Shown piece after piece: positions 170 through 6,177 of a stretch of DNA of 6,177 nt. The DNA is from Trichoplax adhaerens (lineage: Eukaryota > Animalia > Placozoa). The first letter of the stretch is position 1. Every line of letters begins with the position of its first letter. A model generated the notes under the pieces. The model did not search any database and had not been told where the DNA came from. It saw only the letters and a program-made list of their open reading frames with translations. The position numbers and the translations under genes are program-made. The stretch is from positions 1 through 6,177 of the forward strand of contig NW_002061329.1 of the NCBI RefSeq assembly GCF_000150275.1. Direction: 5' to 3'.

Positions 170-740
170 TTGACACATTTAATAGAATACTAGTTTATCC
201 TCGTGTAAGTACCGTAAGTGTCATGTGCTATGCAGGTGATTTATACATTAGCTTTAGTTTAATTAGTCATCAAGCAATTTTGTATTCATCAATCAATTTA
301 ATGATGCAAAATTATTATCCAATCAATGTTAATTCAATCGTTATTGGTATGCGTGGAAGCTATTGTCATGTTCCTATTCTATTCATGTTCATGCTAATCT
401 TGAACTTATTCTACGTGTAGGCTCAACATTTGAGTCATTTTGATGCTAGTGTTGTGCTAATGATGCGTTTTATAATTATTATTATAATGATGATTGACTT
501 AGATGATTGATATATTAGAAAAACGGATAGAAAGAAGTATCGACAAGAAAGCCTGCCCACTTTAATTTATTTCTTCTCCATCATCCTGATGAATTGTAAG
601 AGAATAATGGATGAATGATTGTAAACCGCTAACAAATAAAGGCGTATCCGATTTGGCTAATTAGGGCACGTTCCTAACTGAAATAGACTTTGTAATGCTG
701 ATCTTGATTTGAAAGCATCGAGCATCCATTATAGTGTGCT

Positions 741-770
741 CTTTACGTATTTTATCACTCATTTGTACAG
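741..770 (+). other. Probable 3' splice site of a 5'-UTR intron of the TPR gene
   Basis: A pyrimidine-rich tract ctttacgtattttatcactcatttgtacag ends 87 nt before the ATG. Candidate donors are gtaagt at 205 and 214 and gtaaga at 596. Confidence 0.35.
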
Positions 771-857
771 CGATCAAAATTGTTAACCCTATCGAGTAGA
801 CAAATTGTGACTATTTTTCTCAAATTATATATTTTGATTGTTGTTGAAAAGTAAAAT

Positions 858-3116
858 ATGGCCAATCAGACGAGCAATTCTACGATATTTGACGAGATTA
901 AATCTATACGCAAAAAGGGCGTGAAATATCATGGCGAAGGCAATTATGAAGACGCGTTATTTTATTTTCAGAAAGCTGTAACTCAAATCAAATCGATAGC
1001 GGAGAGTAGTGATAGTCGTCGTCAACTTGAATATTCTATTTATCTCGCTATGGCTCAATCTTACCGGCAAAAATATCAATTGATAGAAGCCAATGAATAC
1101 AGTGGAAAAGCAGAAAAGTTAGCTGAGAAACTAGAAGAGGTCAAGATTTCTTATTGTTTCGATATCCAGGGCGACTGTAAACGACTTCAAGGTGATTTTA
1201 TGGGTGCTTTGCGTGATTACAACAAATCACTTCAAATAAAATTAAAATCGTTAGGGAGTGAACATCTTGATGTCAGTGAGTCCTATCATAACATCGGCTT
1301 GGTCTACCACAATCAAGGCAAGCATGACGAGGCATTAAAAGAATACAATAAATCATTAAGGATTAAACTGAAAATTCTTAAAAATAATGATCCAAGTATT
1401 GCTGTATTATATAACAGCATTGGACAAGTCTATGCTAATCAAGGCAAGTATGATGGCGCTCTATCAATGTATAACAAGTCACTCAAGATTAAACTGACAC
1501 AACTTGGTGATAATCATCCAAGTATTGCTGATACATATAACAACATTGGTCTTGTCTATTATCATCAAGGCAAGTATGATGACGCTCTATCAATGTATAA
1601 CAAGTCACTCAAGATTAAACTGACACAACTTGGCGACAATCATCCAAGTATTGCTGATACATATAACAACATTGGTCTTGTCTATCATCGTCAAGGCAAG
1701 TATGATGACGCTCTATCAATGTATAACAAGTCACTCAAGATTAAACTGACACAACTTGGTGATAATCATCCAAGTATTGCTGATACATATAACAACATTG
1801 CAAATGTCTATGATAATCAAGGCAAGTATGATGACGCTCTATCAATGTATAACAAGTCACTCAAGATTAAACTGACACAACTTGGCGACAATCATCCAAG
1901 TATTGCTACAACATATAACAACATTGGTCGTGTCTATAAAGATCAAGGCAAGTATGATGACGCTCTATCAATGTATAACAAGTCACTCAAGATTAAACTG
2001 ACACAACTTGGCGACAATCATCCAAGTATTGCTGATACATATTGCAACATTGCAAGTGTCTATGATGATCAAGGCAAGTATGATGACGCTCTATCAATGT
2101 ATAACAAGTCACTCAAGATTAACCTGACACAACTTGGCGACAATCATCCAAGTATTGCTTATATATATCACAACATTGCAAGTGTCTATCATCATCAAGG
2201 CAAGTATGATGACGCTCTATCAATGTATAACAAGTCACTCAAGATTAAACTGACACAACTTGGCGACAATCATCCAAGTATTGCTGATACATATCACAAC
2301 ATTGGTTGTGTCTATGATGATCAAGGCAAGTATGATGACGCTCTATCAATGTATAACAAGTCACTCAAGATTAAACTGACACAACTTGGCGACAATCATC
2401 CAAGTATTGCTGATACATATAACAACATTGGTCTTGTCTATCATCATCAAGGCAAGTATGATGACGCTCTATCAATGTATAACAAGTCACTCAAGATGGA
2501 ACTAACACAACTTGGCGACAATCATCCAAGTATTGCTAATACATATAACAACATTGGTCGTGTCTATAAAGATCAAGGCAAGTACGACGACGCTCTATCA
2601 ATGTATAACAAGTCACTCAAGATTAATCTGACACAACTTGGCGACAATCATCCAAGTATTGCTAATACATATAACAACATTGGTCGTGTCTATAATCGTC
2701 AAGGCAAGTATGATGACGCTCTATCAATGTATAACAAATCACTCAAGATTACACAAACACAACTTGGCGACAATCATCCAAGTATTGCTAATACATATAA
2801 CAACATTGGTCGTGTCTATAATCGTCAAGGCAAGTATGATGACGCTCTATCAATGTATAACAAGTCACTCAAGATTAAACTGACACAACTTGGCGACAAT
2901 CATCCAAGTATTGCTATAACATATAACAACATGGGTCGTGTCTATGATGATCAAGGCAAGCATGATGACGCTGTATCTATGTATAACAAATCACTCAAGA
3001 TTCGACAAACACAACTTGGCGACAATCATCCAAGTATTACTACAACATATAACAACATTGCAAGTGTTTATAGCGATCAAGGCAAGTATGATGACGCTTT
3101 ATCAATGCTTTTGTAA
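858..3116 (+). CDS. TPR-repeat protein made of 42-aa TPR-like units (kinesin light chain / nephrocystin-3-like repeat type), about 18 units, with no other recognisable domain
   Basis: 752-aa ORF. The ATG at 858 is in an aaaatATGG context with an in-frame TAA at 852-854. The units match the TPR consensus (Y4, I7, G/A8, Y11, G15, Y17, A20, Y24, S27) plus the LGDNHPSI linker typical of 42-residue TPRs. There is no KLC coiled coil, NB-ARC/NACHT P-loop, signal peptide or TM segment. The 3' end may be truncated or spliced. Confidence 0.93.
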   Translation: MANQTSNSTIFDEIKSIRKKGVKYHGEGNYEDALFYFQKAVTQIKSIAESSDSRRQLEYSIYLAMAQSYRQKYQLIEANEYSGKAEKLAEKLEEVKISYCFDIQGDCKRLQGDFMGALRDYNKSLQIKLKSLGSEHLDVSESYHNIGLVYHNQGKHDEALKEYNKSLRIKLKILKNNDPSIAVLYNSIGQVYANQGKYDGALSMYNKSLKIKLTQLGDNHPSIADTYNNIGLVYYHQGKYDDALSMYNKSLKIKLTQLGDNHPSIADTYNNIGLVYHRQGKYDDALSMYNKSLKIKLTQLGDNHPSIADTYNNIANVYDNQGKYDDALSMYNKSLKIKLTQLGDNHPSIATTYNNIGRVYKDQGKYDDALSMYNKSLKIKLTQLGDNHPSIADTYCNIASVYDDQGKYDDALSMYNKSLKINLTQLGDNHPSIAYIYHNIASVYHHQGKYDDALSMYNKSLKIKLTQLGDNHPSIADTYHNIGCVYDDQGKYDDALSMYNKSLKIKLTQLGDNHPSIADTYNNIGLVYHHQGKYDDALSMYNKSLKMELTQLGDNHPSIANTYNNIGRVYKDQGKYDDALSMYNKSLKINLTQLGDNHPSIANTYNNIGRVYNRQGKYDDALSMYNKSLKITQTQLGDNHPSIANTYNNIGRVYNRQGKYDDALSMYNKSLKIKLTQLGDNHPSIAITYNNMGRVYDDQGKHDDAVSMYNKSLKIRQTQLGDNHPSITTTYNNIASVYSDQGKYDDALSMLL
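885..1388 (+). repeat. Diverged N-terminal TPR units (about 4)
   Basis: Units at 1137 and 1263 keep the 126-bp register (…QGDFMGALRDYNKSLQIKLKSLGSE; HLDVSESYHNIGLVYHNQGKHDEALKEYNKSLRIKL) but have many silent and replacement differences. Two more degenerate TPR-like hairpins precede them (KGVKYHGEGNYEDALFYFQKA; IYLAMAQSYRQKYQLIEANEYSGKA). Confidence 0.8.
1389..3107 (+). repeat. Coding tandem repeat, 126-bp period, about 13.6 copies, very high internal identity
   Basis: Units start at 1389, 1515, 1641, 1767, 1893, 2019, 2145, 2271, 2397, 2523, 2649, 2775, 2901 and 3027 (last one partial). The exact 126-bp spacing shows no indels. The near-invariant core is caaggcaagtatgatgacgctctatcaatgtataacaagtcactcaag. 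Confidence 0.98.
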
Positions 3117-3908
3117 GGTGTTTGATAAGTTATTTGCTTTCGATATTCTGCTTTTGATTATAACGACAGCGCTAACATCACAATACAACACCATACTGAA
3201 GTATTGTAGTCGGTAAACAACTTGTACAACAAGTATTTCTTAAAGGTTAGGTGTTTCAACCCTGTTCAATTCTAAGTCGGTCTATTAGTCTATTAAGATC
3301 TAATAGATCGTAAAAATCGTTCAATAACAAACCTATTGTAGTAGTAGTGAGTATTACAGCCCCAATATAACTTAAACATTGATTCTAAGGTTGTATGAGT
3401 ATTCGTGCTAGTAGTTATAATATTGTTACGGTTTGGTATATCGTGATGAGATGGAGCTGGGATTAACTCACAAGGTACTCCGACTGTCGGATAGCTGATA
3501 TATTCGACCTACTGACTCACAACAACTTGGTAATCTTCGGTTAAGTATAGTAATGCTTTATTTCTCTATTCACTAAACTGCCCATAGCCGCGAGCTAAGA
3601 ATAACGCAATGCACGTAAATCCTAAGTTATTGCCTGGCCATGCAGGACTTATAATCTCTGAAGAGAATTTCAATTTACTAATCGTTCACGCTCAACCACG
3701 AGCTCTGAGCAAACAACTTTGCCAAATACTTGAATACTATACTATTTAAATACAAGCATCCGTAATGGTAATTGTGAGAATGATACGTCCCTTTACGCGT
3801 AATTTACATTCTAAACTCTACGCGATTACAAAACTAAGACTAGAAAAAGTATAGGTTGCAGTAGTTATTAGAGATGCTGTATTAGGTAACCTTAACACCT
3901 TAACATAC

Positions 3909-4115
3909 GCAAGTAACGAAATCCTAGACTAACTAAGATAGATGTTGAATTCTGTATCCTGATGATACTTTGCAACCAAATGTACATATAAGCGGGAGAT
4001 TTCGTCTTCGAAGTTAAGTTAGTCGTAGCTAATCTGGTCCTTGGTGGAAGCTGTAATTTATTCTCAAGATACGGAAGTCTTTGCTTAAAGTTAGACGCTT
4101 TATCGCACAGTGATG
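3909..4115 (-). other. Candidate minus-strand exon (207 bp) or pseudo-exon of unknown product
   Basis: On the minus strand there is a perfect branch motif TACTAAC (4151-4157), a T-rich tract and AG (4116-4117), 68 open codons (SLCDKASNFKQRLPYLENKLQLPPRTRLATTNLTSKTKSPAYMYIWLQSIIRIQNSTSILVSLGFRYL), and a donor GTATGT (3903-3908). In-frame stops lie a few codons outside both splice sites. Confidence 0.3.
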
Positions 4116-5486
4116 CTATTACAAATTAAAATCATATAGAGTTCAATGAAGTTAGTAATTTTATTGCAATAGAAACGAGATTGCATCTAGGCTGTAGAAT
4201 CGACAACAACTATTTACTGCTGAACCTTATCAAAATTACCCAAACTGATCGCTAACGAAGATTTTTTACTGATACAACGAAAAATCGCAAAGGATTATCA
4301 CATTGCAGTGCTTTCAGCTAAAATGCAGTAGTTTTGCGTAGGGCTAATAAGCCTGGCACTACACAGTATACATATGCTAAATCGATCGTCGCATCTCATT
4401 TATCTTTACTACTGGCTTTTCAAGAAAGCGTTTATAAAATCACTTCTTTACCTATACATAATGCATAATTTTACACCAAAATTAGTAACAGTATATTTTC
4501 AGTAGGCTACAATGATGCTTGGATCTAACTGTATACTAAATAGCTTATTCAATAAGTTGAAAAGAGTACCATCTTTTCTCTAGTTAATTACATCATTTAC
4601 CAACACTGATGAATCAATTAGCTAATGACTTAGTCAGTAGTTTTTTTTAATAAAGATTAGATAGCAAGATATCATTATTTAGTATTATATGACTTACAGG
4701 AAGTGAAGTTTACCTTTAGTAAGCAAGACTACTTCTCTAACTTACGATATAGTAACTAGAATCTTTTCGAAATGCACACACTTTAAGGCGCAACACAGTA
4801 TAACGTGCATAAGTAAGTACTTTTATTGGCCATTATCCCCTTCAACTGTACATACTCTGTCAGTCATTGTAAACATATGTCGATATTTTTAAAACTTAGA
4901 TAACTGTAAATTGACAAAGCTTGTGTAACAACATTCCGTACGTTTAAAAATTTCGTCATTTTCACCTACAGTGCAGGTACTTTGCAATACGAGATTTGCT
5001 GCAATCTTTCAGAGTAAACTGAAATATTTCTTTACAATCATCCGTTTTTCAGTAGTCTCATTTTGCTATCGCTATTTTACAATTTTCTGCAAATGATTTA
5101 TTTATTNTTAAATATGACCGTCTGCAATCGTTTGAAGTTTGATCGTTACAAGTACTACCAAAGCGTAAAAAGCCAAATTCTGTTCAGTAAAATGTGTTTT
5201 GTAATAGTCTTCTTTGAATTAAAGTATATTTTTCAATAAGTTCTCACACTCTGTATTTTTAAAGAGAATAGCTTGCAGTTAGTATAACAACATTGAGTTA
5301 AGTAAATCACACTATATTACAATCATTTAAGCCAAAAGAGTACGTACTTTTAACGTTTAACGATGTTATAATACTTTATAGAAATGTTGAGCGCTTGCAT
5401 GCATAGTAGCGAATGAGATTATACAGTACTTTGGTTTCTTTAATGGCTGATGATACTGTATCTTTGTAATGTCGATTCAACTCTAG

Positions 5487-5603
5487 AACAAGAATCAGAC
5501 GAAACTGAGAAACTCAATGCTAGTTGTGCACCCGGAATTCGATTTGAAGTCTCTGTCGATTCTAATGAAACTGTTGAGATAGAAATGGACGAACCTGATT
5601 CTT
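5487..5603 (+). CDS. Probable coding exon, acidic linker (QESDETEKLNASCAPGIRFEVSVDSNETVEIEMDEPDS), of the death-domain gene
   Basis: Acceptor ctctag ends at 5486 and there is a perfect donor gtaagt at 5604-5609. The 117-bp exon is open, phase 1-1, and joins in frame to the exon at 5893. An in-frame ATG at 5450 is an alternative 5' boundary. Confidence 0.6.
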
Positions 5604-5892
5604 GTAAGTTGTACTATGGCTAACATTTTTTTACTATTTTAAGTGACAATACAGTAAAATCTATCGCATACTACAATAGCAGCGACTTGCCTGATTTGTA
5701 AGATGGAGTCATTTAATTGGTTTGTATAGCAAGCGCTTTCAACAATTGCAACTTAGAAAGAGGAATATTCTTGATTTAGTGTAGAGAGAATCGTTCATTC
5801 TTGCTACATTCAATTTTCTATTAACTGTTTCATATGATGTACCGTAAGTAGCCGCTGATCCTATTTTTGCAAATAAAATAAAATTATTGTAG
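5604..5892 (+). other. Probable GT-AG intron (289 bp), possibly containing small extra exons
   Basis: Runs gtaagt…aattattgtag, phase 1 at both ends. The tandem acceptor tagcag (5890-5895) keeps the frame with either AG. Confidence 0.55.
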
Positions 5893-6138
5893 CAGCCAAG
5901 AAGTATAACAGCAAAATCGCAAAAGATATCGGAACGGAGTGGAAAACTTTGGCAAGAGAATTTGGAATGGATCAACGCGACATCCAAAAAATTATAGCTG
6001 AAAATAATGGATCAGTTGACGATCAATGTGCGCAAATGTTGAGTATGTATGCGAGTAGGAAAGGTCGGAGTTACACAAAGAGAGCATTAGTTGAAGCACT
6101 CTTCAAAAGCGGGCTGCGTTCTGTAGCTGAAGATCATC
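5893..6138 (+). CDS. Death-domain-encoding exon (partial gene, probably continuing beyond the window)
   Basis: The frame of ORF 5949-6164 extends upstream to the acceptor: AKKYNSKIAKDIGTEWKTLAREFGMDQRDIQKIIAENNGSVDDQCAQMLSMYASRKGRSYTKRALVEALFKSGLRSVAEDH. This matches the death-domain pattern (IAxxIGxxWxxLARxxG…IxxI…QxxxML…TxxxLxxALxxxGxxxVAE). Donor gtatgt at 6139-6144. 246 bp, phase 1-1. Confidence 0.85.
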
Positions 6139-6177
6139 GTATGTGTAAAGTTATTCTACATTAAAAATCAAAAAGAA

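Follow-up and report, generated by a model that had tools for sequence, protein, structure and literature searches.

The 6,177-base scaffold C1028 of Trichoplax adhaerens (NW_002061329.1), which was analysed in its whole length and is referred to here as the window, carries an expressed gene of three exons (858-3081, 5487-5603 and 5893-6164); the body of the first exon is an array of almost identical tetratricopeptide repeats (TPRs), and the last exon encodes a Death domain. In the TPR-Death protein encoded by this gene, the face formed by the first helix (helix A) of the repeat units is under diversifying selection, and the array turns over faster than the sequences flanking it. The picture that we consider rather probable is that of a recognition protein whose groove binds variable ligands and which signals via Death domains; the further idea that its role is in the recognition of non-self, which comes from the analogy with sensor proteins of other organisms, falls somewhat short of being probable.

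The TPR array and the location of its variable residues

Tandem Repeats Finder revealed a single array, which spans 1386-3107 and comprises 13.7 copies of a 126-nucleotide period with 92% matches and zero indels; it is enclosed in an open reading frame (ORF) of 752 amino acids at 858-3116. In the Pfam search this ORF matched TPR_12 (E 1.9e-217, 704 bits against a cut-off of 30.1), TPR_10 (458 bits) and TPR_NPHP3, that is, TPR profiles of the KLC/NPHP3 type above their curated cut-off. When position 1 of the unit is set at the Ala at 1401+126k, the consensus shows the framework residues Y4, I7, G/A8, Y11, A20, Y24 and S27, so that the TPR framework positions 4, 7, 8, 11, 20, 24 and 27 are all represented, along with the helix-turn-helix superhelix. 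Indeed, in the AlphaFold2 model of exon 1 (mean predicted local distance difference test, pLDDT, of 81; 85-95 over the array; low confidence for residues 46-115 of the N-terminal cap, or N-cap), each unit is built of helix A (positions 40-42 and 1-13), connected by a turn of three residues to helix B (17-35), after which comes a loop of four residues; the two helices, of 16 and 19 residues, are paired. Foldseek matched the model to the TPR domain of KLC1 (template modelling score, TM, 0.86; root-mean-square deviation 2.4 Å) and to the superhelices of OGT and of consensus-TPR (CTPR) proteins, and the closest solved natural sequences are KLC1 and KLC2 (E 1e-42). The TPR solenoid that had been recognised in a sequence-only reading of this stretch is therefore of the KLC type according to Pfam, to the solved relatives and to the structural model.

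The 13 full units differ from their consensus by 53 non-synonymous and 11 synonymous codon changes, and 40 of the 53 replacements fall into six codons (positions 2, 5, 9, 12, 13 and 31), a concentration that, like the observed variance, was reached by none of 100,000 random placements. The amino acid identity between pairs of units averages 0.95 over the 36 framework positions and drops to 0.29 over the six hypervariable ones; for all positions together, the value is 0.853 in protein (0.863 when the first unit is omitted) and 0.917 in DNA, so that the array lies above the threshold by which highly internally conserved repeats are defined in fungal NLRs, 85% repeat identity over at least 100 amino acids (0.853 over 13 units, 546 amino acids). 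Neighbouring units share an identity of 0.93, which falls to 0.88-0.83 at the largest distances. The residues found at the variable positions belong to small sets and are mostly polar (T/D/N at position 2, N/H/D at 5, S/N/R/L at 9, D/N/H/K at 12, D/H/R/N at 13, N/K/R at 31), and some positions are coupled: at positions 8/9, A occurs with S, N or T and G with R, L or Q, and at positions 31/32, R or T occurs with Q. Since the residue sets are small and positions are coupled, much of the diversity is combinatorial.

These counts bear out most of what had been read from the letters: the clustering of the replacements, the residue sets given for positions 2, 5, 8, 9, 12, 13 and 31, and the six silent differences in 1515-2900 (ggt gat once, cta, tac gac, aaa), which were recovered exactly. 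Helix B and the linker, which had been described as nearly frozen, are not entirely so, as 9 of the 11 silent differences lie there.

The concave groove that binds peptides in KLC is built by the A helices. On a helical wheel, positions 2, 5, 9, 12 and 13 point to one side of helix A (mean phase 172 degrees), opposite to the side taken by the framework positions 4, 7, 8 and 11 (30 degrees), and the former five are among the most variable positions of TPRs and are exposed on the concave, ligand-binding face (Magliery and Regan, PMC1261162). The idea that the variable residues are confined to the binding face is therefore shown for five of the six sites and not for position 31, which sits in helix B.

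Selection at the hypervariable codons

The forces acting on the variable codons were evaluated through the ratio of non-synonymous to synonymous diversity (piN/piS), a tree-free measure that is robust to recombination between units. Within the window, piN at the six codons is 0.39 per site versus a unit-wide piS of 0.098, giving a ratio of 4.0 (bootstrap over units 3.0-6.4); it amounts to 3.1 (2.6-3.7) when the 89 distinct units present in nine arrays of the closest paralog group are considered. The proportions of non-synonymous and synonymous differences (pN and pS) at the other 33 codons are 0.012 and 0.066, and the resulting pN/pS of 0.18 indicates that these remaining framework codons are under clear purifying selection.

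The same six positions emerged when changes were counted by parsimony along a FastTree tree built from the 89 units and the non-synonymous rate (dN) was compared with the global synonymous rate (dS): dN is 2.3-3.6 times the global dS at 2, 5, 9, 12, 13 and 31 (Poisson P from 8e-4 to 2e-10) and at most 1.2 times at all other positions. The signal of positive selection is thus carried by a few positions, five of which (2, 5, 9, 12 and 13) lie on the interaction surface. Positive selection had also been proposed in the sequence-only reading, and the excess of replacement over synonymous change at the six positions is two- to seven-fold; position 8 (G/A), which had been listed among the diversifying sites, has to be removed from them, because its dN/dS of 0.38 identifies it as a framework alternation. 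As many as 12 of the 40 hypervariable-codon differences in the window are two- or three-base changes, which would not be expected from recent neutral mutation, given a silent diversity of 7-10%. A targeted hypermutation of the retroelement type was considered and rejected on the basis of these multi-base changes, of the involvement of all three codon positions and of the lack of a reverse transcriptase in the window.

Turnover of the arrays

The nine arrays contain 101 units with 71 different helix-A signatures, and the number of units ranges from 5 to at least 16. Only one of the 13 units of the window has a helix-A signature present in another array; the unit at 1779-1904 is identical over its 126 nucleotides to a unit on C1383. 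The N-caps, in turn, are 95-97.5% identical at the nucleotide level between the window and its paralogs (dS 0.026-0.053). The number and the order of the units change at a much higher pace than the sequence around the array, and the variation in repeat number and order that had been suspected from the window does separate paralogs whose caps are nearly identical.

In the closest group, unit pS is 0.066 within arrays and 0.043-0.123 between arrays; in more distant paralog groups, unit pS is 0.23-0.36 versus 0.56-0.61 for the N-cap. In the closest group, units taken from one array resemble each other no more than units from different arrays do, so that homogenisation is family-wide, and the possibility of an array-specific homogenisation was discarded. 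The concerted evolution attributed to the array from its sequence is thus correct at the level of the family and not at that of the single array. Altogether, these values indicate that the framework sequence pool is family-wide and that the variable codons are kept diverse within it. The shared unit, the decay of identity with distance, the pS patterns and a triplicated block in a paralog on C1333, taken together, point to local unit duplication, unequal exchange and inter-locus transfer. The block in question comprises six units and is nearly triplicated at 100% nucleotide identity (L032, G000:C1333, 3977-5740, minus strand); it might represent either a very recent tandem duplication or a duplication in the assembly.

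Gene structure and expression

The features of the window are listed below, together with the evidence for each of them.

1-857, + strand: 5' flank shared with paralogous loci (92-99% identity to copies on C1360, C963, C1414 and C1333)
858-1400, + strand: start codon and N-terminal cap, about 181 amino acids of degenerate TPR-like helices (ORF start; Pfam TPR_12 at residues 105-170)
1401-3038, + strand: homogenised TPR array, 13 full units of 126 nucleotides (42 amino acids) (repeat finder, codon counts, AlphaFold2)
3039-3081, + strand: partial 14th unit and end of exon 1, ending at the donor CAAG/GCAAGT (spliced contig of run X1)
3082-5486, + strand: intron 1, GC..AG, 2405 nucleotides (contig of run X1, depth contrast)
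3107-3108, + strand: deletion junction relative to the paralogs (alignment to L031, contig of run X19)
5487-5603, + strand: exon 2, acidic linker, 39 codons, the first and last split by the splice junctions (contigs of run X1)
5604-5892, + strand: intron 2, GT..AG, 289 nucleotides (spliced contig of run X1)
5893-6164, + strand: exon 3, C-terminal Death domain, with the stop TAA at 6162-6164 (Pfam Death)

Logan contigs of four public runs were placed on positions 700-6177 of the window. One of the runs (X1) behaves as RNA, having a depth of 178-637 over the exons and of 0.5-74 between them, and does hold a GT-AG spliced contig. An X1 contig with a depth of 92.8 joins 3079 to 5485, with two ambiguous letters, which yields the GC..AG intron 3082-5486, and the 29 nucleotides on its array side are absent from every other paralog compared; a second one (depth 264) joins 5603 to 5893 with 119 nucleotides on the shorter side. 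In a third X1 contig the tail of a paralog (..KQEEEDELA) directly precedes 5485, so that the canonical donor GCAG/GTACC of the intact paralogs is spliced to the same exon.

Each exon was searched on its own, and the join was checked for frame by script: the three exons form a frame of 870 codons with a single terminal stop, 741 of which belong to exon 1. The apparent end of the ORF (..GTIERFVRCLIRYLL and stop) is an intronic read-through, in which the first 26 nucleotides of intron 1 (3082-3107) are the remainder of the truncated unit and an in-frame stop is reached at 3114-3116. A canonical GT donor at 3111 (TTTT/GTAAGG) was also considered and discarded, as it joins exon 2 out of frame and occurs in none of the RNA contigs. 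Besides a repeat-frame artefact running in from the array (2938-3216), intron 1 contains no ORF of 60 amino acids or more, and the gene as a whole has no further one beyond such artefacts.

Exon 3 matches Pfam Death (PF00531) over profile positions 6-80 of 86, with 50.8 bits (cut-off 22.6) and E 1.9e-13; all 30 of its Atlas neighbours are Death-domain clusters, and the X1 contigs place it on the same transcript as the array. Exon 2 has no match in Pfam and is kept in frame in L032. No Pfam match to NACHT or NB-ARC was found in the 752-amino-acid ORF or in the other exons, and none of the 79 Roc hits listed for the genome falls on C1028. Because a nucleotide-binding oligomerization domain (NOD) is lacking, the protein is not an NLR, and the likeness to NLRs put forward in the sequence-only reading does not extend to identity; that reading had the array right and lacked the spliced Death domain, the paralog family and the loss of the C-terminal tail in this copy.

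A shortened C-terminus compared with the paralogs

In the intact paralogs (C1414:12.49 Mb, C1333 and C1414:12.75 Mb), the N-cap is followed by 5-15 homogenised units, by two or three divergent C-cap TPRs and by an E/K/Q-rich stretch of about 120 residues, after which the donor is found. In the window, the array breaks off within a unit at 3107 and is directly followed by the last 30 nucleotides of the read-through tail of the paralogs, which implies that the C-cap TPRs, the E/K/Q stretch and the canonical donor are gone; the GC donor of the last unit is used instead. From 3109 onward the window aligns to L031, from 3983 downward, at 94.7%.

One might suppose that the unit order, the unit number and this junction were produced in the assembly by collapsed or mixed reads of at least nine near-identical arrays. 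The window, 6.2 kb long, is an orphan scaffold that includes one N, many of the paralogous arrays lie on small or gapped scaffolds, and two DNA runs have no contig over 3079-3261. However, a contig of run X19, which is labelled with another organism code, spans 3078-3831 and crosses the 3107/3108 junction, showing no difference before 3141 (63 nucleotides), so that the junction is real and not an artefact of assembly. Moreover, the helix-A signatures of 12 of the 13 units are absent from all the other arrays compared, every bin of the array is covered in four independent runs, and the same hypervariable pattern is seen in all the paralogous arrays. An origin of the array in the assembly is, in our opinion, extremely unlikely.

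The paralog family

The 5' flank, the N-cap, the 3' flank and the Death exon are 89-99% identical to those of at least seven other loci, so that the window represents a single copy of a segmentally duplicated region of 6 kb or more. A search of the AT-rich genome (105.6 Mb, 1414 contigs) with the DNA of four units gave at least 247 matches with 76-94% identity on many contigs, and the same genome contains 12 close copies of the Death exon of the window, no fewer than 110 Death-domain exons, among them those of the TPR-Death-Roc-COR relatives, and 79 or more Roc matches. Many of the Death exons are clustered (C1398, C1404, C1392). Judging the downstream parts of several paralogs from match coordinates, a TPR array with a Death exon on the same strand 2.5-5 kb downstream occurs at no fewer than nine loci belonging to at least three paralog groups.

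A search for homologues of the N-cap retrieved only generic TPR proteins at 23-48% identity and did not return even the paralogs of this genome; only generic TPR clusters were obtained from the Atlas, and a contig search with the 752-amino-acid ORF as the query gave no record.

The closest paralog (L044, G000:C1414:12751000-12760999, minus strand) has an N-cap 96.7% identical to that of the window, and in the 1-1885 region downstream of its TPR exon we find an acidic exon, a Death domain unlike that of the window (1166-1555, E 3.5e-9) and an ORF for a Roc GTPase (1-657, E 6e-6). The modules that follow TPR exons of almost the same sequence can thus differ, and the family at large comprises TPR arrays upstream of Death-domain exons both with and without Roc-COR. 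The Trichoplax genome is known to contain at least 17 ROCO genes with TPR, CARD and Death domains (Civiero et al. 2014, PMC4104024); the gene of the window sits in an already catalogued family, and the family context found here agrees with the published ROCO catalogue.

This context invites an alternative to a receptor of variable ligands, namely an endogenous adaptor or regulator that would act, through Death-Death contacts, as a switch-less partner or decoy in the network of TPR-Death-Roc-COR-Death proteins. Its TPR faces would bind peptides of the organism itself, as KLC does with its cargo, and their variation would reflect the subfunctionalisation of paralogs or an internal conflict rather than pathogens. 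The idea fits the finding that KLC is the closest solved relative, the Death and Roc sequences downstream of an almost identical TPR exon in L044 and the published family of ROCO proteins with TPR and Death domains. However, conserved partners of the organism itself would predict conserved residues in the groove, where we find dN higher than dS, and the arrays are completely different between paralogs whose caps differ by 3-5% at silent sites. We regard such an adaptor as an unlikely explanation that nonetheless deserves attention, and we retain the recognition of variable ligands as the preferred one.

Comparison with known systems

The closest analogue of the array is represented by the internally conserved TPR, ANK and WD repeats of fungal NLRs. 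The KLC-like TPRs of these proteins are about 85% identical; they are polymorphic in number, are exchanged between loci and are positively selected on their concave face. Among metazoan repeat proteins, just 0.8% have such highly internally conserved repeats (Dyrka et al. 2014, PMC4986451). The fungal NLRs (NB-ARC-TPR or NACHT-TPR proteins of Podospora, HET-E/D/R) and the window share KLC-like TPR units of 42 residues that are about 85% identical; in both, the repeat number differs, units are exchanged within and between family members, and a few helix positions facing the concave side are positively selected. In contrast, fungal repeats are C-terminal to a NOD (NACHT or NB-ARC) and the effector is N-terminal, whereas the protein of the window has an N-terminal array and a C-terminal Death domain and no NOD; in addition, the unit numbers found here, from 5 to at least 16, were compared between paralogs, and the host is an animal.

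Candidate receptors with NB-ARC-TPR and LRR-ROCO architectures have been described in brown algae (Zambounis et al. 2012, PMC3341825; PMC11378527). The algal NB-ARC-TPR genes resemble that of the window in their modules of 126 nucleotides (42 amino acids), in the shuffling between loci, in the signs of diversifying selection and in a clustered birth and death. They have one exon per repeat, generate diversity by exon shuffling and alternative splicing and contain NB-ARC, whereas the array of the window is a single exon; the selection signal of the algal TPRs is weak, that of the window strong at six sites. The Trichoplax TPR-Roc-COR-Death (ROCO) proteins occur in the same genome and have the same kind of TPR array and a Death-fold tail, and the gene of the window differs from them by having neither Roc nor COR; the published catalogue deals with domains only and does not report hypervariable homogenised arrays (PMC4104024). 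Lastly, the TPR domain of KLC (PDB 3NF1, 3ZFW, 7AI4) is the closest solved natural fold, with 42-residue units in register; KLC itself has six divergent, conserved repeats and a heptad region binding the heavy chain, and has no homogenised array, hypervariable sites or Death domain.

By analogy, the protein may work like the sensor domains of fungi and algae, and yet it belongs neither to the NLR/STAND proteins nor to the ROCO proteins; the gene is an animal, NOD-less and Death-coupled version of the diversifying, internally conserved repeats. Our literature search retrieved no paper on hypervariable, homogenised TPR arrays or on a TPR-Death architecture in placozoans.

Proposed function

According to the model that we favor, the product consists of the N-cap, 13 and a third KLC-type TPRs, the acidic linker and the C-terminal Death domain, with no NOD or Roc-COR switch. 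The TPR superhelix might offer a ligand-recognition surface whose specificity would be set by the combination of units; the binding of the ligand would concentrate the Death domains, which, in turn, might assemble with other Death-fold proteins, including the ROCO relatives, and elicit a signal of the cell-death or innate-defence type.

Several points weigh against this model. The function is proposed by analogy, and, in the view of Kamm et al. (PMC6321704), TPR/WD40 NLR-type proteins take no part in the recognition of pathogen-associated molecular patterns. Position 31, in the last third of helix B, is not placed on the concave face. The array splice comes from one Logan contig with a 29-nucleotide side, in a single run whose RNA label is a guess; the order of the units comes from a Sanger whole-genome assembly of a multi-copy repeat; trees of units built from 126 nucleotides with recombination are unreliable; and the choice of units at 80% framework identity or more biases the framework pN, and slightly pS, downward. 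The copy in the window may also be a degenerate member of the family, since it has lost the C-cap repeats and the charged tail and uses a non-canonical GC donor. Finally, the dN/dS of its N-cap (858-1262) against the closest paralogs is 0.5-1.1, a range based on small numbers with a dS of 0.026-0.053, which a relaxed constraint could fit as well as selection or an adaptive change outside the array.

The last two points lead to the idea that the gene is a decaying by-product of segmental duplication and that the variable sites are simply unconstrained positions on the surface of the TPRs. Besides the deletion of the C-cap, the E/K/Q tail and the canonical donor, this would account for an unspliced ORF that stops mid-unit, for an N-cap dN/dS reaching 1.1 versus one paralog and for the fact that the variable positions are those that vary most in TPRs generally. 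If this idea were correct, however, neutral drift should have led to a dN/dS close to 1 and not to 3-4; moreover, the exon of 741 codons has no interruption and its frame continues into the Death domain (870 codons), a spliced RNA contig exists at a depth of 93, the framework has a pN/pS of 0.18 and the deletion junction is also present in X19, a run labelled as a second organism. We consider decay very unlikely and continue to favor a functional recognition protein.

Placozoans are among the simplest animals, and Trichoplax houses intracellular bacterial symbionts. We can speculate, in a tentative manner and with considerable doubt, that placozoans carry a germline repertoire of NOD-less, combinatorially diversified TPR-Death receptors, a counterpart of the fungal NLR repeats, in which unit shuffling among many loci would provide new binding grooves, coupled to Death-domain signalling, for defence, for the control of symbionts or for allorecognition. 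Published work lists the placozoan TPR/WD40 NLR-type and ROCO genes and treats TPR proteins as unlikely sensors (PMC6321704). The TPR arrays of Trichoplax exhibit the signature of a recognition surface, that is, a frozen framework, dN higher than dS on the helix-A face and a rapid turnover of units, and the gene of the window reveals that a direct link from such an array to a Death domain is possible in the absence of a nucleotide switch. If these findings are borne out, the principle of internally conserved repeats under diversifying selection would extend from fungi and brown algae to animals, and a concrete set of candidate receptors would be available in an animal with intracellular bacterial symbionts.

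Additional observations

The donor CAAG/GCAAGT (codons Q-G-K) is present in 15 copies in the window (1314-3087), one per unit, at 1314+126k, and only the last of them (3078-3087) is used in the RNA contigs. It could be imagined, in a more speculative way, that splicing from the GC donors of different units might vary the length of the array in the transcripts.

Two paralogous loci have peculiar structures. In L046 (G000:C963), the 5' flank is 99.2% identical to that of the window and is followed by a wholly different array of nine units, ending at about 2700-2790 with a different junction (..SVYSD and then unrelated sequence); this might be a truncated copy or a divergent haplotype. L043 (G000:C1414:12555000-12564999, minus strand) contains two 100% identical copies of an ORF of 356 amino acids (390-1457 and 3388-4455) downstream of a frameshifted TPR paralog; the ORF may be an additional exon or an inserted element, and its C-terminal peptide also borders a gap in L031. 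The possibility that it encodes a ZU5-like domain was dismissed, as it has no Pfam match, and the ORF is missing from the window.

An N-terminal myristoylation was likewise discarded, the protein of the window starting with MA (MANQTS) and not with MG, as only two of the paralogs do. Position 900 of the window is an A (Lys in DEIKSIRK), whereas all four runs and all the paralogs have a G (Glu), and the discrepancy might be either a strain-specific difference or an error of the assembly.

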